From Podarcis bocagei (Eukaryota): a stretch of DNA of 64,000 bases. Made by a program: the position numbers and the translations under genes. The notes under the pieces were generated by a model. It saw only the letters and a list, made by a program, of their open reading frames with translations. It was not told the origin of the DNA and ran no database searches. Of the stretch, positions 6,912 through 45,000 are shown in pieces; within the stretch, counting starts at the first letter, position 1; each line of letters opens with the position of its first letter. The stretch lies in assembly GCA_964188305.1 (NCBI GenBank), contig OZ076886.1. One strand, given 5' to 3'.

Positions 6912-7592
6912 TTAGCAGCAGTCGTCCTCATCGGTTTCGCTATAAGGTTCGTGCAGTCCTTTGCGTGATCCTGTCCCACGCGACTTGGCTGGTCCATGCG
7001 AGTGATAGTACCCATTGGGGAGCCGCCGCGCATGCCTGGAGGGGGAGAGAGAGGACGAGCCGCTGCCCACCCGGGAAGTTCTGGGCGAACGTCCTGAGCT
7101 GCTCCCGTGCTGCTGCTGCTGCTCCCGCTGCTGCTGCATTGTCTCATAGGGGAAGGCTTCCTCGCCGCCGGGGCCCGCGTAGTCCGGACTCCGGTAGTAG
7201 CCGCTGCCGTGCCGGGGCCCCGGGTGCGGCTCGGAGACGTGCGGGGCCGACCAGCGGCTGCTGGCGTGTCGGTAGGCCCGCGGCGAGTCGTTCCGCGGCG
7301 GGACCGTGTGCCGCTCCATAGCCGGAGACCTGCTGCGACGCTCGGAGACGTGGTGCTCGGCGGGCAGCGACGGGTAGCGCCTCGGGGCTGGGCTGGAGAT
7401 CCGGCCCGAGTGCACGGACGGCTGCTGCTGCTGCTGCTGGGGCCCCGTGTTGACGGCCTTACGGACCACGGGGGAGTAGGAGATATGTGGCCGGGGTGTA
7501 GAAGGGGTCTGTGGGAGCTGGCGGCGTCCTCGCCTCGGGGTGCTGGTGCCAGACGTTGAGAGGACCGGACTCCCACTTACGGAACTACTGCC
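6912..7592 (-). CDS. CACNA1A: CACNA1A exon 47, long form (226 aa + stop): [35 protein letters not shown]...QQQQQQ...[12 protein letters not shown]
   Basis: Acceptor ttcgtgtag|GGCAGTAG; open frame to TAA 6912-6914; RIM-BP SH3 ligand RQLPQTP; polyQ. The alternative acceptor 5 nt downstream (start 7587) gives an immediate TAG (short form). Confidence 0.95.
7422..7439 (-). repeat. (CAG)6 polyglutamine tract at the SCA6-equivalent position
   Basis: ctg x6 on +; [21 protein letters not shown]. Confidence 0.9.
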
Positions 7593-10500
7593 CTACACGA
7601 AAATCGAAACAAAGGAAATCAAAAAGAAAAAATATACAAGGAAAATCAACCAAGAAGAGACACGAGGAAAAGTGGCGGGGCAGGAGTGAAAGTGACACAG
7701 ACATGGACAAAGTTGGCAAGAGGAGTGGGGGGGGGGAATGGAGGCAAAGGAACGAAAATAATTCGGCGGGGAAAATAATAATTAAAGCGACAGCCACATC
7801 AGGGGGGAGGGAGAGGAGGGCAAGGGGGACAACGAAGAAGGGTAATAATAATAATAATAATAGGAGGAGGGGGGAGGATCCAACACAAAACAAAAGCAGA
7901 AAGAGAAATGAGAAATGGAGTTTTTATAAGTTCCAGGGTTTAAAAAGCAGCAAAAAGCTTTAAAAATTACTTGCACGTTTTTTTTGGCGGGGGTGGGGAG
8001 GGGAAGGAAACAAAACAAACAAACAAAAAAGGGTGATGGTCAATTTATTTAAGAAAACAAAAACTGAAGGAGAGGGGCGGGGCAGGATTGATTTTGCAAA
8101 GCACGGGTCATATTGCATGTTATCAAAGTGGTTAGGAGGGGAAAATAAGAAAAGAAAAATATCGAGTTGAAAAAGGAAGGAGGAGGTTGGGACAGAGTGA
8201 CGGGGTAGAAGTGGGAATCTAGCAAGGAAAGTGAGGGAGAGCACTGGGTCTGGAAAAGTTTGGAACAGAGCCGAACTCTTGAGGGAGGCTGTTGTGTACC
8301 TGTGAAATGTTTAAGCTCTTGGTGTAAGGCCTGTGCGTGCATGTTCTCAGTTCAGGCAGGCAGGCAACAGTGTGGGCTCCCCAGTCTGGTGGAGCCCTGG
8401 ACCAAATGAGAGTTCACCTCAGAGGCAGTTTCCCACTTCGTGCACACTGAACTCTACATTATTTATGGATGATAACTCCTCCACCCACATACAGTTAAAG
8501 TGGCCTCCTTGACCAGATTGCCTGATGGATTGCAGTACAACAGACCAAAGCTCCACCCAGTCCTTAACCCTACTTGAATAACATGTGGAAGACAGTAACA
8601 AAGCAAAACAAAACCCTAAATGCAAAAGACCGAGACCTTTATTATATTGCCAGTACTGAGCAGTTTACTCCAGTTGTGAAGCTGAAGGGCTCATGTCTTA
8701 CTAATTGTCTTACTTCACCAATTCTTTGGACTGTTAGGCTCAAATGAGTTTTTATGAGTTATGTCATACTATTTGTTCCACAAATGAATCTTGTTAATAT
8801 GAAGAAATAAAATATGCATTCTGAGCACTGTATATGTCACATTAGATTGATTTAGTAACAGATGTAAAACTTGTGTGTAAACCCCCACCCCCATTAAGTC
8901 TTGTGCCAGACTATAGCAGCTAGAAAAAGAGAACTACTGAATGAACTTCAAAAAGTACACATTTTTAGTAAAATGACTGCAGATCAGACAGACCGGCAAG
9001 ATAATGAAAGAGAGGGATTTTCATCTGTCTGGCTTGGATAGGGGCTTTGTTCCATGGCAAGTGAATGAGGAGGTGTGTGTTGAAAATACTGATACTGTAC
9101 TTCCCTCGCTGTCAAGAGAATGGAAATGGGTAAGCTGGGTACCAGGGTATGTACTATATGTACTATATGATGCGACCTCCAATTATCACATTGTCACTAA
9201 ATCTAACAGTAAAGCAAATGACACAGAGCAGGCAAGGAAAATTTTCTGACTCTAGCACAACTACCTCTGTCTAGGAATATGGATGAGAGAATAAGTTTCA
9301 GTATGGTTTAAAATGAGGAACAAAGAGGATAGTCACTGATATTTTTCCATCAGGAACACACACACACTTGGCTGTGCAGTGCTATAAGGTTCTATGGCAT
9401 ATTAGAAATAATTTCATATTAAATAGGTAGTGCTTTTAAAGTTAAATTTGATTAGCAGTTTCTTAAGGCAGGAAACAATATGTTTTAACATCTGAACTGC
9501 AAAGTACTGAGCAGCAAAAAATGCAGTGTTCATTGAAGCCAGCAGCAATGTCTCTTTGCATCTTGGTCAAATATAGGCTGCACTACATTTCCAGGTGCTT
9601 CTAATGCCCCTTTCTTGAGAGTTTATATGGTGCCTTTGGCTCTATAAGTAAGAAATATGAAGTTCAAAGTTGAGGAAGGCTAAAAAAAGAGAATTGGGGG
9701 TAGCTTTCTAAGAAGCACCTGGCAGAGCTGAATCCCGAACTAACAACTTTCAGATCATATCCTTCACCTCACCCCAACTAAAAGAATAATTTTTTGTTGC
9801 TGCTATCATTAGGTAACCATTGGTAAGTTGCTTCTACCCTTCCTGTTGTCACTTTCCCTGTAAGCAAAATTTTTATCAGTTTCCTTCAAAGAGGCTGAAC
9901 TCATTGTGATGGGTCTCTTCAGATAAAGCACACTCAGAAAGCAAACTTTGTGTGATTTTTAAAAAAAGTTCTATAACATGGCTGAATGGTTCGGTGTTAT
10001 TGCTATGAGAAGCGTCTGATAGTGTCTAGTATTGGCTGAACCAACAAAAAGTGAAAAGACAATGATGTAGCCACACATGCAGAGGCAGCTGTTTCCTTCA
10101 TGGGAGTTGGCACCTCTCTAGTGATAGAAGACCCCACTTGGATGGCCCTCAACAGGATAATAAGGCCCCTAAACTCCAGCTGTTGATGATAAAAAGTGAT
10201 AGATGTATACACATAGACTCTGTAAATCACCCAGGAAGGTGAAGCCAAGTTGGTCATTCAAATGGAATCATTTTGCATCTGTGATCAGCCAATTGGGACA
10301 AGAGAACTTCAGAAGAGTAGTTTGAGAGTAGTGGAAATCTAGCTTGAGTTCAGCCTTATAGAACTAGAATGCTGGAGAGAGGCTCCTGAAAAACCTGCAA
10401 TGTGGTTGCCCTGGGTCTTGCACCACAGAAAGTTGTGAGAAGAGGCTTCTGTGGCATCGTTCAAGTGATCAGCCACTCTTTGCCAGCAATGAAAAGGAAA

Positions 10501-11887: not shown

Positions 11888-13286
11888 TATTTCAATGAAA
11901 TATCTCTTTCTGTATCATGTTGCACCATACATGCATCTATGAATGCCTATGTATGCCATACAAACCTGCATATTATTTGTTATGCCATGCCTGTACTGTG
12001 TATTTTAGTATGCTGTGAATATTTACTTACACAATTTATATGCATCCTTTTGTATTAAAAACACACATGCATGCCCTGCATCTCTCAGTATTAGCTGTAC
12101 TTACAACTTTTTGTATGCCATAAGACTCAAAATCTGTATGGGGTGTCTGTGTGTGTGTATCATATGTGTCTGTATCTAATTTTGGTATGTGTAGCTGAAA
12201 ACCACCATCTACAAGAGACCATCTACAGCTGCATGCCACAGAACTTAGATCTCTAGAACCAAATATAGGTATTCTGCAAGAATCCTTTGATTCTCAACTT
12301 CTTATTTTGGGGATGTACAAGAGGAATCCCTCAGAGCTGCAGGAAGAACTTTAAAACACAGGGGCAATTTTCTATTGACAATTCAAGGGGGTCCCACTGA
12401 TCATAGATTGTATCTCCATTCCCAATATAGCTTCTTATCCCAGTTCAAACTTCATAATACGTATTCTACATAATGCTTTTAGTGTCCTCTTTTCCTTTTA
12501 ACTTACTAAATTTTGCAGAAGAACCAGAATTTGCAGTCTGAATACATTACTGAAAATCAAGTCAATTTTATGAGAAGATGCCTAATGTTCAAAATATATT
12601 ACTGCATAATTTGAAATTTCCTAGGATAGAATTTTAGGGCTAAACTGGACTAGGTCAGGAGATCTGTGACTGTATATCCTGATGCTTCTTTAAACAAATA
12701 AGCAGTTGTAGAGACATAGCTTGGGCCCATTACACTAGAGGAGGGGATCCAACACTTCACCATTCCAATTTAAATATCTCCTGAAACTGCTATTTGACTG
12801 ATCCCCTGCTGGAGAAAATCTATCAGTACCTCAGAGTCTTGTCACACCCTTGGGCATCCCTCTCCCATATACCAGGGATGAGAAATATGAAGCCTTCCAG
12901 CTAGTGGTAGACAACAACTTCCATTAGCCTACGCTAGCATGGCCCATGGTCAGGGAAGATGGGAGCTGACATCTGCAAGGCCACATGTTCCCCGTGCCTG
13001 CCATATATCCTGTGTTCTATATACGCTCATTGCATGCATGCCTACAGTTTATGCATGTATTTCTGCTTTTTTCTTGTTTTGCTTGGATGTGACATGCACA
13101 GCTTACATGTGTGCCTGTCTCTTCAGGTGCAGCTTCATTCCAAACTTTCCAGATTCACAAACCCCAGAGAGTTCAGTGCCACCAGCGTAACAATAAAGGG
13201 GTCACACCACAGACACTGGAGAAATAGGCCAGCGAGCTAGGCAGGGCCATCCGCTGGATTGGTTTGAATTTTTGTTCTCTGCTCAC

Positions 13287-13310
13287 CAACCATCTTACCT
13301 GCGCCCGCCC
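13287..13310 (-). other. CACNA1A: Candidate in-frame microexon (GRAQ / GRAQVRWL / VRWL) or recursive splice site in intron 46
   Basis: 128-nt AG-free pyrimidine-rich zone, then gag|GGGCGGGCGCAG|gtaaga, with a second donor TTG|gtgagc 12 nt further on. Confidence 0.5.
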
Positions 13311-14234
13311 CTCGCCGTGACAGCAGAGCCAAGCACAACGGATACAGAAATAAACATGTAAATAAAGGCAGATTGGCCAGGAGACCCCGAGTAAAGCGTC
13401 CAAATTGTCCAAAGGAAACAAATAGGAACAAAGAAAATGACTTCGTGTGTGATAACGGAGGGGCGGCGTGCAGCAGTGGGGGGAATAAATGGAAAACAAA
13501 GGAATAAAGGACCTTAAGAAGAGTCTCATCGAGTAATTGTATTCTCATTCACCCAATAAAATTTTGATGCAGTTCACATAAAGCTGGGCACAACCGCTGT
13601 CTTGAGGCTCTACCCTTATGTTGTTCAATTTTCTCTATAATTAAAGTGGTAGGCTTTATTATTTCTTTGGCTTTTGTACCACACTATGAAGATAAATAAG
13701 GAATGTAGTTGTGAGCTTCAGTGTGAGTTTGATAGCCTTTGTTTTCTTGGCCCATTACAGGATATAATATTTGGCATGGAGATGGGGTAACATGCTGCAT
13801 TAATATATGGAGGGAGCCAACTGCACTACTAAATTGGCAGTCCTGGCATTGCTCCAGTTCCAAAGCTGTAGACATACAAACACTGCAATAGAATGAATCC
13901 AGACTAAGCCCTGTGAAAATCAAACCCTGCAAACCCATACTTCCTTAGGTGTGAACTCAGCTTTGAATGAACTAATTTTTTTTGATACTATTCAATTGTC
14001 TTATTTTGATCAGAGGATGTACTCCAGTAATAAAGGTGACAGAATTTTCCACCCATTTTCTCTATATAAGTGCCATTAAATATGCTGTCCATGATATGTA
14101 TATAATTAGCAGGAACATAGCCTAAGCAGCCTTGTCCAAGCCACAGGAACTTGTGGTATCCTGTTGTGATACCTCAGGGATATTGTAAATGGGTTTCACA
14201 GACATTGCAATACTTGTCTGTGCACACACATTGT

Positions 14235-15684: not shown

Positions 15685-15932
15685 CTGCCTGTGAGGCATG
15701 TGGTCTCGGCCCTCACTGGGTGAGCGAGACCAACGTCGATCTCTGGAGCGAGGCCGGCTATATTCGTGCCTCTCTTGTGAGTACCGCTCTTTGTCAGAAG
15801 ATGTGTGGTGGTGATGATGGTGGTGGTGGTGGTGATGGTGTTTCCGGTCCTTTGGCCTGCCTCGTTCTTGGTCTCTTTCTTTGGGAGGTAGGTCACCTGA
15901 CTGTGTGGTCATGCTGAGGTCCGTGCCCAGCC
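15685..15932 (-). CDS. CACNA1A: CACNA1A exon 46 (248 nt): [31 protein letters not shown](H)12TSSDKERY...HMPHRQ
   Basis: tggcag|GG acceptor (phase 1); CAG|gtgggt donor (phase 0); poly-His 15805-15840. Confidence 0.96.
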
Positions 15933-20696: not shown

Positions 20697-23600
20697 TACT
20701 GAGTCAGAGCAGCAATCTAAGTATTGTCTATATTGATTGGCAGCAGATCTTCAGGATTTCAGACAAGCTTCTCTTCCTCCTCTACCTGGAATTGAACACA
20801 GGACTTTCTACATGCAAAGCAGATGCTCTGCTACTGAGCTATGGCCCTTCCCTGCATTATAGGGCCGTTCTATGGTCCTTTATAGTATGTTACAGATTAT
20901 TTCATTTGATAGATGTGTCATCCTGAATATATAATTTGGGTCTGAAGTAGCAATCACACTTGAGTTGGGATGCATACTTAAAGTTATACATCATTATGTT
21001 TTGTGACACAGAGATTTAATCATAGCTCATTTGGGATGGATGTTGATATATATCATCCAAACTTTTGGTCAAGAGATATTGGAGACATCTGGATCGAGAA
21101 AATGAAAAGGGACCAAATTAACAGAAAAGTATGAGGGATGTTTTTGGAGATTATGCTGCTAGTGGTTTTAACACATCCTTTCAGAAACAATATAGGACAC
21201 AAGTCATAAATTCAATTACATATGTATGGACAGTAGTCATTTTCAAATGATATCATCTGTGATGGTTTTCTCATGAAGAACACTCCATAACTGCACTGAA
21301 GACTACCTTGTCTCCAAAAACATATCTAATGCACCCTGGACCACATTCCAGGCTGAACAGCTTCAGAAATGGTTGTGAAATATGACTTGATATATTAACT
21401 GTAGGAATGGTACTGTGAGAAACATTCAGTCATGTCCTTTCCAGCAGCAGTGAGGAACCTGTGGCCCTCTAGATGTTGTTGGACTCCAGCTACCATGAGC
21501 CCCAGTCAGCATGGTCAATGGTCAGAGATGATGGGAGTTGTTGTCCAATAACTTCCTGAGGGTCACATTTCCCTCACAATGCCTTACAGCAAGCACTGCC
21601 AGAACTGGCCGTGTGTAGTATCAACCATATTTATTTAAAGCACCACCAGTCATATACTTTTAAAAAACATTTTTTTAAACAGCCATGAAATTTGTCCAGA
21701 AATGGCTATACAGTTTCCGGTAGCTACTATGTAACTTGAATGCCTTCCTAAATGCCTAGCTGGAGTCTTATAAGGTGAACTGTAAATGTTGCTCACAAAG
21801 AAAACGTTATCTTATATCCATTCTGGGAGCGAAATTACATTTTCTACCCTTTTTGTGCATACCCCAAAATATTGGAGTTCTAGAGTATCAGGAAAAGATC
21901 AGTCACACACACATCACTGTATTCTGCCTAACAAAGGTTCATTATTGTTTTATTTTATTTTAATTTAGGTAAATTTAGGGAAAGACAAATTAATATTGCC
22001 ATGTGCAAACAAACATGTTTCTTACCACTTGAAAGCAGTATATTCCATTGCAGAGCAGGGATCAAGGTTCCACACACTATCCCTGCCTTGGACAGGTTAA
22101 CACTTCTCCATTATACTAAGACATTGTTCCCTCCCCTTGAAATCACACTAACTCAGAAAGAGGAAATGCTAAAGAAAGAAACCAGGACTCCCAACCCCAC
22201 AGTCATACTGCTCTGACCAAATAATCCCACGTCTCAGTATGCAACCCAGAAATCCTAGTAGTCAACTCGCCCATATTTAACACAAAGCCAGAAATAACAC
22301 TCTTGCTTACAATCCCCTCCCTGCTGGAGCCACCTGACTCTTCCTGTTTCACAGGACAAGAGAGAGAAAAATTACTCACTTGTAACTGATGCTCTTTCAG
22401 TTGTCCTTCCCCTTTTCCCACCTATATATAGGTGCAGATGCATATACAACCAGGCCTTCCAGAAACCTCTCTCCAATAGATTATTCTTGGAGTAACCTCA
22501 GCATGGGGCTGCTTGTGCATGGTGAACCACAATTAAAATCAAACAAGTTACCACAAAGTTGCAGATAACTCTCAAAAAGGAGTTAAGCTAATCCAGTCAC
22601 CTCAGACATGTAAGACTCCTACCTCACAGTTTCATCAGAATCTATTTGGGTGGGTATTCTGAGACTGAGACTGAAGGGAACATGCTGTAGTAGACATCTG
22701 GGAAAGGGTCGGAAATGGACAGAGATAATTTAAAATAGCATCACATATAAGCTAGCAACCATTTCTTAAAGAGGCTCGGTCAATTTTGAAAAAAGTAAAC
22801 AAGAACAATGGTATCTTCTACAACATGGCAGTTTCAGCAAGTACATTCATTGAAAACGACAGCCATTCATAGCTCTTAAGGGATCCTGCTGTAGGAAGTA
22901 CAGCCAGTCATATCCAGATTGTAAGTTTTTCCATCTTGCAATCCCCTCCTCTAACTAGATGTGCTTCAGAATTGAAGGAAAGAGGCACAGAAATTTCTCT
23001 GGGAGATTGCTAAGAAAACCACAGACATTTCTAATTAAAATGGGAAGTTTTCTTGATAGAATGCCTCCTTTTGTATCAAGTAAAAATGAATAGAGCTGGT
23101 TGGAGAAACTATCCCTCTTAGGTGCTCTCTGCACAACATTATTGTGGATCTCAAATATGCACATTCAAGTACAATCAAGACTTGGTCACACCGTATCTGT
23201 CAATTCAGCAAATTCAGAAAATGGTAGGCTGTGCTTCGGCTGCACAGTCCACACATGGGAAGCAGATAAATGGACACAAAAAGCTCAGTGTCACACCATC
23301 ACTTTGCTCAGGCAACACAATTCTATACCAAAAGCATGTGCTAGAAAGTAAGGAAAGCTTCCCATGTGCCCTAACACTCTCAGCTCAGCAGATGAGTGCT
23401 TTTGCAGTGAAATAAAAGGCAATTCCTGCTCTGGTGGCTCACTGCTGAGCAGTTGTTTCTGGAAGGCCTGGTTGAATGCACATTGATTCAACAACTGCAA
23501 ATGGGCAGATCATATTAGAGAAGAAAGAGAGGAACATGTTGGACACACAGAATCCAGGATTTGGTGGAGTGAGTGTGAGAATGGATAGCTGGTCCAGATT

Positions 23601-24498: not shown

Positions 24499-24534
24499 AC
24501 TGAGATTATTCCCTCGCGGTCGCGCCTTCCTCCA
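24499..24534 (-). CDS. CACNA1A: CACNA1A cassette exon 44 (36 nt): WRKARPRGNNLS
   Basis: gcgacag|TGG...AGT|gtatgt; phase 0/0; homologous to mammalian RRRGRPRGNNLS. Confidence 0.93.
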
Positions 24535-27500
24535 CTGTCGCAGCCATACAAGACGGTGCACACAGAAACGGGAAAGAGAGAGAGAGAAGGAAATAAATAT
24601 AAAGGCAAAGGGAAATATAGGACCAAAGGGGAGGGTGGAGGAACCAGAATATGGTAAAGGATTGAAGGGAGGAGTGTAAGGAGAGAACAGTCAGGTTAAT
24701 GTTGGTCATTTATGCACAAGGCCAGCCCAGCCCAGCCCAGTGCTGGAAGCTCATATTCTCAGATATTTGGTTGCTCTTGACAACCAAGATAAACAAAGAT
24801 AGACGCCACGAAGGGACGGACAGTTCTCAGTAGGGATGAGTTGAGCAGCACAGCGGAGACAACAGCAAGGCCACACACTCCCCCCCCCCAACCCAAAACA
24901 TGCGGCAACAAGCCTCAGCCACTGTTAAAAGCTGCAACATTGTGCACGGCCCAAATGGGGACAGTCACCCCTACACACAGAGCTGCTCTCACTGATTGGC
25001 TGGGCCCCCTCGTCTTCGCGACTTTGGCCTTGCCAGCGCAACCCAGCCCAAAGGAGGCAGAGTAAGGCAAGGGGAAACTGCAGAGGAAGCCCTGAGCAGG
25101 ATTTGATATGTGGAGAAATAGAGGTCTGTAGCCTTGGACATACCTACAATGTTAGGAATTCCAAGAAATGAATTTCTTGCCATTTCTTTGGATGGAAGCA
25201 AAGTTTGGGAGATTCTTTGTATGCTAACTCTGAAGCCTAATGAGAAAAGTGTCATGCTGAAAGGGACTAATGAATAGAGTATGAATGGCTGTACTGCCTT
25301 TTTTATTTGGTAAATGATGTTGGTAGGTGCTGCTGCCATGGGTGTTCTCTCTTGATCAGAGTAGCTTCTGGTCAGACATGTGACTGCTGAAATGGAAACA
25401 TTCAGCGTCTTGATTCTTGCATTGTTTCAAACTGGTATAAAGGCTATGAATCACCATTTACCTTGGATGGAGAGAAAGGCAACTATATTTGTATATGTGG
25501 GTGTGGATGTGGGAGAGAATTAGGGGAGGAATTTACCATAGGTGGTCACAGAGCTGTTTGACAGTGGAACAGGGTGCATTGGAAAGTGATGGGCTCTGAT
25601 TCACTGGAGGTATTTAAGCAAAGGCTGGCTGGGCCTTTGGCAGACATGCTGTAGCTGCATCCCTTGCAGCGCTATGGTTCTAAAAACATTCCCACTAACC
25701 TGACTTTTTCAGAATGCCTTATTTTAGACCTTTGGTTCTCCAAAATCTGTCTTCCTTAACTGATAAGAAAGGCATCAGTTTCCACCAAATCACCCCAGCT
25801 TAGTATTCTTGCCCAGCAGTCACACAACCTACACATATTTCTGATCTAAAGGCTGTTGCCACTTCTCATCACGACAGGCCAAGATTTCTGAGGAAGAATC
25901 AGGAGTTTTCTGATTGGGTATTGGGAACTGTTATGGGTCCTCCTCAAAAAGACCCAAACAACAATAATTCTCTTGCAGAGTTCAGCACTGAGGCCACCTA
26001 GGCAGCCAAGGGACACGATTATCATGGGGATGTTTTCTGCAGTGTGACATCCATAAGAGTGTATTACTGAGAGAGAGGAGTCACACTGAATAGGCTGCCT
26101 CCAGACAAAACTAACTTTGGAGATTGGAAGACAAGTCCAAGACTGCTCCAGTCATCTGCTCCTCTCCCCGAAACCCAGAGCTAAGTGACAGGAGGAGGGC
26201 CAGGACAACCCCAGCAGTATGCACATCTGGAGTCTGGAGGGAAGTGCAGGAAAGGGATGACCTGGTGGAAAAGGTACATGGCTTCTCCTATAAAAGGTTT
26301 CCTGTACTCATGGTTGACTGCTACAGCAACAGAGTAAGACCACCGCACAGGAATCTGGCATCTGGACACAAGCTGAGAGTAAGTTTTGCAATGGAAAGTG
26401 GCAGTAGGAAGGTGCATGTGTGAGAGTACCAAGGGAAAGGGCAGTGCTACAAAAGGGCTGGCAGAATGTTTATAGGAACACCAGCATCATGACAGCACTG
26501 CGACAAGAAAGGTATGTAAGTGCCTGTGCTAGGACAGGGACAGAAATTGCCAAACTGGAGAAGGCAAACTACATGCAATGTGGCAGTTATCACCCAGTGT
26601 TACATTACTTTGTTTAAAAATGTTATGGCCTTCTTCTAATCTGTAGGGATAAAGAAGGCTATATGTCATAGGCCTACAAATGGCAGCGGGGGAGGTTTGT
26701 TTCCTACTTATACAGATCGGCTGCAATAGGCTTGGTGAACTGAGACAGCATTGCTTATTGGAGTAGGGCAGGGTGGGGAGCCTTCCATTTTGACCTCTCC
26801 CCATTGGCCACACACAGTCTCACTCAGAAGAACTGGAACCAGGTACAGAGATGGAAGGCTCTAGGACAGGTACAGAGAACCTGCAGTCCTCCAGATGTTT
26901 TGGGGACTTCAACTCCTACCAATACCAGCCAGTATAACCAACTGTTAGGTATGATAGGAGTTGTAGTCCAACAGCATCTGGAGGGCCACAAGTTCCCTAC
27001 TCTGGTTTTAGGAAGTTCTAGCCTGTCCGTATTTTGGGCAGTAGATGTGCAGCATTTAGCAGCTTCATCCCGCCATAATTCCCTCTGTCATTTTGAGGTT
27101 TGATTACCAGATGCAAAGCTCATGCAAAAAAGTAAAGGAGAACCAACGCCATTCACCTCCTTCCCTGCAAACAGATGCCCCCTTTCTGCACTGTAACTCA
27201 TCATCACAGCTGTACTGAAAGCAACACTTTCTATTACATACTGGATCGTCTTCTAGGAGCTGTGCTGATGTTGGATCCAGACTGCACAGAAGGTCTTATC
27301 AGTCCAACTCCAGCAGACAGGCATAGCAGGCAAGCATCCGGCAGCGATAAAAAGCCTAAGATGCTTTAAAGCAGAAGTGGCCAACTTTTTTTTTGGCAAG
27401 TGTACAACCACAAATCAAATCTAAAGAATAATACAGTACTACTCAGCCTCACTCTGCAGTACATAATAAAATGTTCTAGTGTCTTGGAACTATTTTGCTT

Positions 27501-31840: not shown

Positions 31841-31976
31841 CAGTGTTTCCCAACCTTGGGTCTCCAGCTGTTTTTGGACTACAACTCCCATCATCCCTAG
31901 CTAGCAAGACCAGTGGTCAGGGATGATGGGAACTGTAGTCCAAAAACAGCTGGAGACCCAAGGTTGGGAAACACTG
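31841..31976. mobile_element. Palindromic hAT MITE (young copy); decayed relatives near 19990, 21450, 26870, 29010, 37895, 43450 and 60000
   Basis: Near-perfect hairpin cagtgtttcccaaccttggg...cccaaggttgggaaacactg; perfect 8-bp TSD ctctagtc. Confidence 0.92.
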
Positions 31977-37679: not shown

Positions 37680-38513
37680 GTTGCTGTTACAGCCACTCTA
37701 TATCAGAGTTGAATGAGTCACACTTCACATTGTAGGTGTTAGTTGGTGTGTTTGACCATTACTGCCCTCAACATTTCCAAGAACAGTTTTCTCCTTGACA
37801 TTCTAAAGTTCTGTTCTACATCATCATCATTATTTTTTTTGGTCAGGGTGCTTTCCATACCACTCAGTAAGATGACTCCTTGCATGTAGATCAGAGATGG
37901 GGAACCTGTGGCCCTCCATATGTTGCTGGACTACAACTCCAATCACCCCTGACCATTGGCCATATTGGCTGAAGCTGAGTCAGAGTCCAGCAGCATCTGG
38001 AAGGCCACAGGTTCTGCAACCCTTATCTACACTTTGGGAGAAGTCTTCCTGAAAGATGTGGAATGCACCCTGGGGCATTCTGCTCCATGGGAGGTTTCTG
38101 TGCTCCCTGACCTCACCTGTGGGGGGCAAGCAGACAAACTACTATGGCAAAATAACCAGAAAGATCTCCAACCCAAGAGAGTCAGAAAAGGGGCCTTGGA
38201 GCTTTTAATAATGACAAGTACATTTCATCCTGTGTAAACCTCTACAGTGAAATGTTCATTGGTTTTAAAGGCAGCATCACTCTTCTGATGGGTCTTTAAC
38301 ATAACTTCTTTCTTCATGCATAGGCTGGTACTGGGATGTTTGACCAATTTAAGAGGCAGAATGCCTACCCCTTACTACTCCTTCCTGGGGAATATCTGGT
38401 CCAGGGAGCCTTGTTTCTCCTATAGGCATTTGCATACATATTTCTGTGCAATGTATCATCTATATAAAAGAACTAGCAGGTACTATAATTGTGCAGTGGT
38501 AGTAGTGTAGCTA

Positions 38514-42062: not shown

Positions 42063-45000
42063 TGAGTGTTACTTTGCTTTTATGAATGGCATAGGAACCG
42101 CTACAGCATGGCTGACCTCTAGTAACAATGGATTCATGTGGCTGGGGCCAGCAGCATAGTTACCTCCCATAGGAGCAGTGACCTGTCCCAGGACCTGCAG
42201 AACTGTTATGGGTTTGTAAACTACCTTGCTGCCTCCACCCACAGAATTGTCTTCCTTCAAATGTTACCACACTGCAGCTATTATTATATCACAAACTGTG
42301 ATATTAGGCCTGAGTGTAACAGTTGCTTGTGGCTTCCCTCCTCCCCACTCCCATGCCACATGCCCTTCTTCCAGAGTCATTCTATACCCACTTTCCCCCT
42401 ATTGTTTTGCTGCATTCAATTCCCTGAAGCATTTCTTGTAGTGACCCAAAATATCTCAATGCCAATCAAAACAAAAACATAATGTTATAGAAATATTCAT
42501 ACAGATTTGTATTGTTCATTAAAAAAATCACTTATAGCTTGTAGTTTCTGCTTACTGAATTTGAATTTCTGTATGTGTGCATGTGTGTGTGTTTCAATGG
42601 CACAGAATTCACAGTGCGCTTATTTGGGGACAGCACCCTAGCTTTTCCATGCACTGGAGCAAGCATGGATTGCAACAGTAAGGGAGATGAAAGAGCCAAA
42701 TCATGTTAGCCATAGTGTATGTAGGCTAATGATTATGAAAATGCCAATTCTGTCGGAGAATTGGGTCCCTTGGATTGCTGTCTCATGCAGAATAAACCCT
42801 GGGATCTCTGTATGATTAGGGACAGTGAATAAGGGATAATGGTGGGGGTAGATGGATACAGGCAGCAATTATTTACCAGGGCAGATAGGGCGGTCAGAAA
42901 TCCCAATTCTCTTCCCCACAAATATGTAAGGGAACTGCAGAACAAATTTATCTCTCTCTGGTTTTCTGGACAGCTGATGTCATGGTTGAATGAACCAAGG
43001 GATATATGGACAATGGTAGCGAATGGGAAGGACATGGAAGATTTACAGAGGAGTGGGCCATTACAGAGGAGAGAGATTATTATAGTGTATTGCACTGAAA
43101 ACAATATTTTTACTCAAAGGGTTTTGTAAAGCTGGGATGTAAAGCACAGATATGGAAATGGCACAGCTAGGAATGAGGCCTATGAGTCTTGACACCAAGG
43201 CCTCTAGCCTAAAGTTCATTTACCTTGAGCTCCACACACCACATTCCTTCTCCCATCTCTTCATCCTCCTTTCACCAAGTCTATGCTAACCTGGGATTCC
43301 TGACAGCCAATGCAAGCCCCTGCATACAGTCTCCTTTGAAACCAGATGCCTTACCAGGGTCTAAGGCACAGGTAGCTATGTGCATTTCCTTATGTAAAAA
43401 GTCAACATGGTACAAACAAAGCTTTTCTACACCAAAGCTAGTCAATGCAGTACCCTCCAGATGTTTTTGGGCTACAACTCCCCAAGGCAGCATTGCTAAT
43501 AGTCAGGGATGATGGGAACCATAGTCCAAAAAACATCTGGAGGGTACTAGATTTTTTACCCCGCCCTACCTAATTGCTTGGCCTTACATGATGAGCCTAA
43601 TACTGCCAATAACCACTTTTAACAATTCCATCTGCATTAAGGCTAATTCGATTTTTGCCCCCATTCAGAAACGATTCATCAGTGTGCTGCTCTTCTCCAG
43701 CCATAACATGATCGTTGCAGATCATCCCATGACAGAAGGCATGGACTGCAGTGTGGACTCACAATGGTTCCATATCTTCCTGTGACTCTCCACAACTTAG
43801 GACTAGATTTCAATATTTCATTGAGAAGTTAGCATAGTGGTGGCTTTTTCAAAACATGGTCACTTGTGCCTCCTGTCTGAAGAATAGCAAAATGCAAGAG
43901 GTATTCTGTGAATGCAGCCTGCACCCTAACAGCAATACCACCAAGTCTCTTCAAATTCCCCCTAAGGAATTTTATTCTTCTCTGACCAGCATGTACTTAG
44001 TTGAGTTGTTGTTTTTCTTATCCTGGTGTTGTCACAATTAACTGAGGCATGAAAGTAGTTAGATACCAAGGATGACTTTCCCTCTAGGTGGGAAAAAGGG
44101 CTTAGCTTAGCAGTACAACAAATTGTTTGAAGGTCTTGGATTCAATCTCTGGCATCTCTGGTTGAAGGGTCTCAGGAAACAAAAGCTGGGAAAGGCATTA
44201 GATAGATAGGCTAGATAGACTTGATTTACTGCAACTTTGCATATTCTTATAGAATTGTAGAGTTGGAAGGGACCCAAAGGGTAATCTAGTTAAACTCCCT
44301 GCAATGCTCCTTTTTGACATTTGTGTGCAGCAAACGGCAGTTACTATGACTGTCACAGCATATTTAATTTGTATCGAGGGCCTCCCATCTGTACCAGCAC
44401 CTTAGCAAGTATGGCAATACAGTATAGTTTGTTGGTACTCACAGGCTTTAGCTTTCGACTGTTCCAGGAGACAGGATGTAGGTCAGTGGTGGAGTATATG
44501 CTTTGTACATAGAATGTCCCAAATTCATTCACATGCATATGCAGTTAAAAGGATGAGGAAGCAGATGATGGGGGGAAACTTCTGCCTAAGACCTCAAAAA
44601 GCCACTTCCAATCAAAGTAAGTGAGCAAACAATACTGGGCTTCAGGTAAGCAGATGAAATCCAGATTGTTCATAGATATATATTCAACACTGGGCTGACT
44701 ATTAATGTGTATGTGCCTGACAGGGCAGGACAACATTTTCTTTGTAGCCTTTCAAATCTTCTAGTTGTTAACTGGTGGTTGGGTTTTTCCAAGCACTTTT
44801 TTTTTACCTTTCACCTGCCCTCTTTCCATATCTTCCATATCCACTATCCAATGTATTGCTTCTTCAGTTAGATAGTATTCAAGCCAAATAACTCGCGTTT
44901 CTCAAACAGCTACTGTTTTAGTAGCATATAGTCATACTCAAATTATAACAAATGATTGCAGATCTCTAAGAAACTGTAGCCGATTTTGCGTTTTCATTGT

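Follow-up and report, generated by a model that had tools for sequence, protein, structure and literature searches.

In microexons that depend on SRRM3 or SRRM4 (SRRM3/4), the AG is remote from both the branch point and the pyrimidine tract, and a UCUCUC...UGC enhancer is combined with a strong 5' splice site (bioRxiv 10.1101/2024.09.17.613571); in neural microexons of human and chick, the branch point has a median distance of 45-47 nucleotides (nt) from the 3' splice site (PMC12871342). One microexon has already been described in CACNA1A, i.e. the 6-nt NP exon (PMC4317164). Vertebrate recursive splice (RS) sites with RS-exons, in which an acceptor directly abuts a donor, have likewise been reviewed and extended (PMC6224609, PMC10156609). 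Here we compare with these systems a module in a stretch of 64,000 nt from Podarcis bocagei (GenBank assembly GCA_964188305.1, contig OZ076886.1), referred to below as the window. The minus strand of this 64-kilobase (kb) window holds the 3' part of the squamate CACNA1A orthologue, and the last intron of that gene, intron 46, contains, 5.7 kb upstream of exon 47, the sequence gag/GGGCGGGCGCAG/GTAAGATGGTTG/gtgagc (slashes mark potential splice boundaries). The site is almost certainly functional, and its layout and conservation indicate that there is very probably a splice-related functional element exactly where it had been named in a preliminary description of the window. More specifically, the module is, judging by its sequence, probably a microexon, or a recursive splice module, that is of the SRRM3/4 type and specific to sauropsids.

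Reading out the minus strand showed that the preliminary description had placed gag/12 nt/12 nt/gtgagc and two downstream UGCAUG motifs at the correct coordinates throughout. An acceptor-like AG (gAG/G, 13311-13312), which lies within GCTGTCACGGCGAGGGG, is followed by a 12-nt candidate microexon (GGGCGGGCGCAG, 13299-13310) that encodes GRAQ, and by a first donor, CAG/GTAAGA (13293-13298), which may alternatively represent a recursive site in which the CAG acceptor abuts GTAAGA. The second 12 nt (GTAAGATGGTTG, encoding VRWL, 13298-13287) end at a second donor (GTGAGC, 13286-13281). Upstream of the acceptor-like AG there is, as had been claimed, an AG-free pyrimidine-rich tract or AG exclusion zone of 128 nt (13313-13440, 67% pyrimidine), with TGC at -60, -25 and -15; two UGC motifs (13335-13333 and 13325-13323) stand between the pyrimidine tract and the AG. 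A branch-point-like UUUAC occupies 13358-13362 and has its A at 13359, i.e. 49 nt upstream of 13310.

Splice-site scores were derived from an approximate weight matrix based on consensus frequencies, and are not MaxEnt scores. On this scale the first donor reaches 11.0, by which it ranks second among the 399 GT sites of the intron and among the best 10 of the 3503 GT sites of the window, and the second donor reaches 7.3. The combined layout is rare. Both strands of the window were scanned for an AG that is followed after 3-30 nt by a good donor, and preceded by at least 60 AG-free nt with at least 65% pyrimidine. This gave two hits, both of them on the sense strand; when a donor score of at least 10 was required, the module in intron 46 alone was left. 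AG-free gaps of at least 128 nt occur eight times on the sense strand versus twice on the antisense strand. Of the eight, three lead up to exons that are truly alternatively spliced, namely exons 47, 44 and 37b, with AG-free lengths of 365, 208 and 165 nt, respectively, and can be taken as positive controls from the same gene.

For a comparison between species we used the genomic loci of partial gene models that were reached by a protein search with exon 47, and aligned intron 46 of the window with that of Gekko kuhli and of Rissa, Bubo and Pezoporus, which represent three bird orders. The length of this intron is 8.1 kb in the window, ~10.9 kb in Gekko, 4.5 kb in Rissa and 2 kb in Pezoporus. 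The whole module lies in a conserved intronic block of 385 nt (13080-13464, minus strand), which aligns with Gekko kuhli (locus L002, 5855-6241; E 7e-127) over 388 nt at 86.3% identity, to be compared with 91% for exon 46 plus its flanks. What else aligns between the two species in the remainder of the 8.1-kb intron is limited to a few short patches of 71-76% identity, one patch of 82 nt at 87% (8291-8211) and the region directly upstream of exon 47. The core TTGGC..GCTGTCACGGCGAGGGG..CAG/GTAAG was found in intron 46 of Rissa, Bubo and Pezoporus alike, with a three-way bird identity of 0.94 and 0.82 over the core versus 0.33 for the whole intron, and in Anolis sagrei the core is kept at the protein level; the module forms the peak of the conserved block. 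Further downstream, the element CTGGAAAGTTTGGAATGAAGCTGC (13126-13152, minus strand) is 92.6% identical to Rissa and 88.9% to Bubo, and nearly invariant in the five species. The intron-46 alignment that had been proposed thus recovered the block in Gekko, in three bird orders and, at the protein level, in Anolis, but no trace of the element was seen in intron 46 of kangaroo rat (552 nt) or bowfin (1.65 kb), and two metagenome scans for the core gave no match. As the element is absent from a mammal and from a bowfin, the idea of a general Cav2.1 feature does not hold.

The conservation of the module is position-specific. In the birds the branch-point-like UUYAC takes the form UUCAC at the same distance of -49 (in Bubo 1 nt longer), and Gekko has a weaker UGUAC at this position with UUAAU just upstream. 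The AG-free tract varies in length, from 128 nt in the window to 60 nt in Gekko, 68 nt in Rissa, 76 nt in Bubo and 170 nt in Pezoporus. Within it, the pyrimidine tract proper, i.e. the 23 nt after UUYAC, is invariant at 46% of its positions, yet its pyrimidine fraction stays at 0.70-0.83, no AG is gained, and one base in Bubo is the sole indel among the five species. Of the positions -25 to -1, which include the UGC motifs and GCTGTCACGGCGAG, 76% are invariant, and UGC between the pyrimidine tract and the AG is kept in five of five species, as is the acceptor-like AG itself. The interval from AG to GT (11-12 nt) has 9 invariant positions out of 12. CAG/GTAAG is the same in all five species, with five of the six donor positions +1 to +6 invariant (CAG/GTAAGA in the window and Gekko, CAG/GTAAGC in the birds), and from +7 on the number of invariant columns drops to 3 of 34, which means that the conservation ends at donor +6. 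The candidate exon of Gekko, GGGAGGGCGCAG, likewise encodes GRAQ, and the second 12 nt plus the second donor are identical in the window and Gekko; the second donor has no counterpart in Rissa, Bubo and Pezoporus. Two UGCAUG motifs (13098-13093 and 13038-13033, minus strand) lie downstream of the donors; with a density of 0.58 per kb in the window, two of them within ~270 nt are slightly more than one would expect. Gekko retains the distal motif and has UACAUC in place of the proximal one, and neither belongs to the part that is conserved in birds.

In its architecture the module agrees with SRRM3/4-dependent microexons on many points. It measures 11-12 nt between AG and GT (24 nt with the second donor); its 3' splice site is weak, with UUYAC and the pyrimidine tract at ~49 nt upstream; UGC stands between the pyrimidine tract and the AG, and the tract is rich in UCUCU in birds; its 5' splice site is strong and the flanking intron strongly conserved; and the host is a neuronal ion-channel gene. 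The match to the SRRM4 layout that had been proposed (upstream UGC, long AG-free tract and strong donor) is thereby borne out at the level of architecture, with inclusion and SRRM4 dependence being putative. The module differs in that its length varies between lineages and in birds cannot be divided by 3, that its acceptor is gAG, that it is nowhere annotated as a cassette exon, and that it occurs in sauropsids only, most neural microexons being common across vertebrates.

In terms of mechanism, the spliceosome would encounter a weak 3' splice site, composed of UUYAC at ~49 nt upstream, a long AG-free pyrimidine tract, UGC motifs and the acceptor gAG, and 11-12 nt further on a near-consensus 5' splice site, CAG/GUAAG. 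Most likely, it would define a tiny alternative exon from these two sites, located between exon 46 and exon 47. The sequence, its rarity and its position-specific conservation are established by the analysis; that the module is spliced at all, the tissue concerned and whether the 11-12 nt are retained in messenger RNA (mRNA) are matters of inference. Within the reading as a splice module of the SRRM3/4 type, inclusion of the microexon in mRNA is a real possibility that we put somewhat short of even.

Alternatively, the GUAAG of the module could serve to splice the module out again, in a zero-length, recursive use. Like described recursive sites, it has a CAG that abuts GUAAG, and, with exon 46 ending in CAG, its joining to this exon would regenerate a strong CAG/GUAAG donor; like RS-exons, it is followed by a second donor 12 nt on, in the window and Gekko. 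Unlike recursive sites, it has a G-rich stretch in the 20 nt before its CAG (score -8.2), with a competing GAG 11-12 nt upstream, and it resides in an intron of 2-8 kb rather than of tens to hundreds of kb. Unlike RS-exons, it lacks a second donor in birds, and 12 nt is far shorter than the RS-exons described. The earlier suggestion of a recursive site plus RS-exon is thus matched in part: the invariant CAG/GTAAG agrees with it, the second donor is confined to the window and Gekko, and the lack of a pyrimidine tract next to the CAG and the size of the intron disagree with it. Recursive or decoy use is an unlikely variant of the splice module.

Several observations weigh against a splice module of this kind, or against parts of it. 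Birds have the 11-nt GGGTGGCCCAG instead of 12 nt, and the interior of the candidate exon is more variable than its flanks; together, the difference in length between lineages and the variable interior argue against selection on the encoded peptide. The variable interior suggests that selection acts on the signals, and this leaves room for recursive or decoy use. Both acceptors are weak by the weight matrix (-3.1 for gAG, the last 8 nt of which are purine-rich, and -8.2 for CAG), host introns of 2-8 kb are short for classical recursive splicing, and the local CpG cluster together with a GC box would equally fit an element that acts at the DNA level. Annotation adds to this side. None of ~160 annotated CACNA1A proteins from birds, turtles, mammals and fish, a set that includes the multi-isoform NCBI sets of Grus, Strigops, Mycteria and Taeniopygia and the Ensembl isoforms of turtles, has an insert between exons 46 and 47: exon 46 is joined directly to exon 47, or the protein ends at exon 46, or it is an unrelated artefact, and the listed members of the bird and turtle clusters carry no insert either. 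A frequently included exon is thereby made less likely, although the point is not conclusive because exons as short as 11-12 nt are easily missed by standard read mapping (PMC4317164). Finally, in the one NCBI model that uses the donor CAG/GTAAGA, the donor is treated as the end of a first exon.

This model, XP_060615822.1 of Anolis sagrei (P0076; 295 amino acids), reads MFISVIRCAWLCCHGEGRAQ/GSSSVSG (...GEGRAQ/GSSS), i.e. ...IRCAWLCCHGEGRAQ joined to GSSSVSG, and corresponds to the first donor joined to the GGCAG acceptor of exon 47. The last 15 residues before the junction equal the translation of the window upstream of the CAG/GTAAGA donor. Its first exon may be an ab initio extension by Gnomon, the NCBI gene prediction; in our own reading, the model could also be the pipeline product of reads with a 12-nt microexon that were aligned from the microexon onwards. 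A search with the N-terminus of the Anolis protein found no other protein with a GRAQ/GSSS junction.

The best surviving alternative to a splice module is a conserved non-coding DNA element, such as an enhancer, a silencer or an insulator-like element, in which the splice-like motifs would be incidental to a protein-binding sequence, e.g. the GC/GT box GGGGCGGG or GGGGTGG. A block as large as 385 nt, with a second conserved island 100-170 nt downstream, would suit such an element, as would the fact that no annotated isoform contains an insert. The same can be said of the CpG content: CpGs are kept unlike in the flanks, as had been pointed out, such that 13201-13500 has 13 of them while the adjoining 500 nt on each side have none, and the local observed/expected ratio is ~0.95 over 200 nt versus 0.24 for the window. 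However, the CpG cluster itself is not conserved, since Gekko has TG or CA at the positions of many CpGs that lie outside the core in the window. Moreover, the edge of the conserved stretch coincides exactly with +6 of a consensus 5' splice site, the constraint on the pyrimidine tract concerns composition and spacing rather than sequence, AG is avoided over at least 60 nt in five of five species, and the combined architecture occurs about once per 64-128 kb, on the sense strand alone. Splice signals predict such a constraint on pyrimidine content, together with a fixed spacing, the avoidance of AG and a boundary at donor +6, and a protein-binding DNA element does not. We hold a DNA element to be an unlikely explanation of the block.

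A further possibility is that of an alternative first exon behind an internal promoter, starting upstream of 13299 and using the donor CAG/GTAAGA to join exon 47, so that the exon-47 tail alone would be encoded. The sole annotated use of the donor, in the Anolis model, is of this type, and a GC box and the CpG cluster adjoin the donor. Against this, the Anolis ATG does not share the frame of GRAQ in either the window or Gekko, where the reading from it (MFISVSVV...) leads to a stop, and a coding first exon is thus not conserved. A first exon has no need for a conserved upstream branch-point-like motif, pyrimidine tract, AG-free zone and acceptor AG, and a GC box at 10 nt or less from the donor lies too near to it to act as its promoter element. 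The models of Gekko kuhli and Sphaerodactylus townsendi have other, non-conserved first exons before exon 47, which implies that such models are often prediction artefacts, and a 12-nt microexon left unmapped in a read would give the same kind of truncated model. We consider the alternative first exon improbable. A chance coincidence of motifs in neutral intron sequence, for which one could invoke the many AG...GT pairs of any 8-kb intron and the poor acceptor scores, is highly improbable given a core that is invariant in the window, Gekko and three bird orders, a block that is 86% identical within an otherwise unalignable intron, and an architecture that is unique in the window at a donor score of at least 10; the alignments between species already contradict it.

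Some other candidates were tried and rejected. An RNA gene was discarded, with no Rfam match in 12800-13700 at a permissive threshold and no covariation support in the consensus folding of two and of five species. A repeat or transposon was discarded as well, the block being single-copy in the window and the nearest copy of a squamate repeat (12879-12979) lying outside it. Protein-coding exons on either strand do not fit: open reading frames cross the block, but there are four 1-nt indels relative to Gekko downstream of the donors and a frameshift relative to Anolis upstream. The first exon of the Gekko kuhli model P0002 (L002, 10002-10121) is not conserved in the window, and a Bubo model that ends in RQP followed by a stop relies on an acceptor that is unrelated to the core and lies 250 nt downstream of it.

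The junction between exons 46 and 47 sets the presence of the long C-terminal tail of Cav2.1, which in human contains the polyglutamine (polyQ) tract of spinocerebellar ataxia type 6, and the tandem GGCAG acceptor of exon 47 selects the long (polyQ-bearing) versus the short C-terminus. In the window, exon 46 (15685-15932, minus strand) ends in ...HMPHRQ in phase 0, at the donor CAG/GTGGGT, and its protein is 100% identical to exon 46 of Gekko kuhli and 94% to that of a turtle. Exon 47 (6912-7592, minus strand) begins at the tandem acceptors tag/GGCAG/TAG/TTC, a triple AG (7584-7595) that offers 7592, 7587 and 7584 as first bases, and ends in ...DEDDCC with the stop codon at 6914-6912; its protein is 81% identical to that of the gecko Sphaerodactylus. 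The tag/GGCAG/TAG acceptor is common to the window, Gekko, birds and a rodent, and the triple AG is also present in birds (locus L003, 15510-15525). With a turtle protein, 15 further exons were mapped across the window.

The splice module shares with the GGCAG acceptor of exon 47 that the candidate exon lies on the same junction and would act through the same choice of frame; it differs in being separate, 5.7 kb upstream, and absent from the rodent intron. It had been claimed that every combination of the two acceptors and two donors keeps the frame. For the 12 nt of squamates this is correct, as GRAQ, VRWL and GRAQVRWL are all readable in the window between the phase-0 exons 46 and 47, and inclusion of the frame-preserving 12 nt would give either a long C-terminus with four additional residues or a short form that ends in GRAQ followed by a stop. 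It does not extend to the birds, in which the 11 nt would shift the frame and the long C-terminus would come from the TAG or TTC acceptors and not from GGCAG. Translation of the combinations gives GWPRAVVR and a stop for the 11 nt of Rissa with the GGCAG acceptor, and restores the long frame (GWPSSSVSG...) for the bird 11 nt with the TAG or TTC acceptors. One could imagine from this that a neurally regulated microexon and the GGCAG acceptor act as a coupled frame switch, the wiring of which has changed between lineages, an idea that we regard as speculative and rather unlikely; with the same reservation, the 12-nt length in squamates versus 11 nt in birds would change which of the tandem acceptors of exon 47 gives the long tail.

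If the splice module is what it appears to be, it would constitute a second, lineage-specific control point on the Cav2.1 C-terminal tail in reptiles and birds, and a case of a microexon that has been overlooked by standard annotation. It could also account for odd 'alpha-1A-like' gene models that contain exon 47 alone. Direct medical relevance is limited because the rodent lacks the element, and the interest of the module is chiefly evolutionary and mechanistic. The candidate appears to be new: in agreement with the preliminary description, which knew of no Cav2.1 exon at this place, neither the papers found nor the annotation searched describe a cassette exon at the site, and no paper on an exon in CACNA1A intron 46 was found in a literature coverage that left out the supplementary chick microexon lists.

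Apart from the module, the analysis yielded a number of minor observations on the same gene. The ~400 nt upstream of exon 47 (7593-7976, minus strand) are poor in AG, with AG-free runs of 365, 94 and 155 nt, and the stretch is conserved in Gekko and partly in a rodent (locus L004, ...AACCCTGAGACTTACAAAACTCCATCTCTCATTTCTC...). Two isoforms of Grus americana (X6 and X7; P0215 and P0219) use the third AG of exon 47 and thereby a third frame, which leads to a tail of 148 amino acids; in the window, the third frame would yield a tail of ~41 residues. The C-terminal DDCC (6912-6935, minus strand) instead of DDWC is common to turtles, birds, geckos and Anolis, and DDWC is found in a lungfish and in one unidentified transcript (P0041).

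At the exon 46/47 junction, notothenioid fish models (represented by P0077 of Dissostichus eleginoides, in a cluster of 33 sequences) show a 7-residue insert, HRQ-VGSKDTE-GSSS, that appears to reflect a donor located 21 nt inside intron 46, with VG being GTGGGT read through. Models of Gekko kuhli (L002, 10002-10121), Sphaerodactylus townsendi (P0084) and Bubo scandiacus (L006, 20341-20346) have non-conserved small exons attached to exon 47 or 46, and these look like prediction artefacts. Copies of a squamate interspersed repeat (...GGAACCTGTGGCCCTCCAGATGTTG..GGACTACAACTCCCATCA...) are located at 12879-12979, 21451-21551, 31846-31946, 37898-37949 and 43475-43532, the first of which is just downstream of the conserved block.

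Elsewhere in the window, the 36-nt exon 44 (~24535-24500, minus strand, acceptor at 24536; ...WRKARPRGNNLS) is preceded by its AG-free tract of 208 nt (within 24500-24744), which is the second longest on the sense strand of the window. The intron that precedes this exon contains the sole further microexon-like layout of the window, 21 nt long (25462-25482, minus strand), tatag/TTGCCTTTCTCTCCATCCAAG/gtaaat, with an AG-free tract of 69 nt and a donor score of 8.7.

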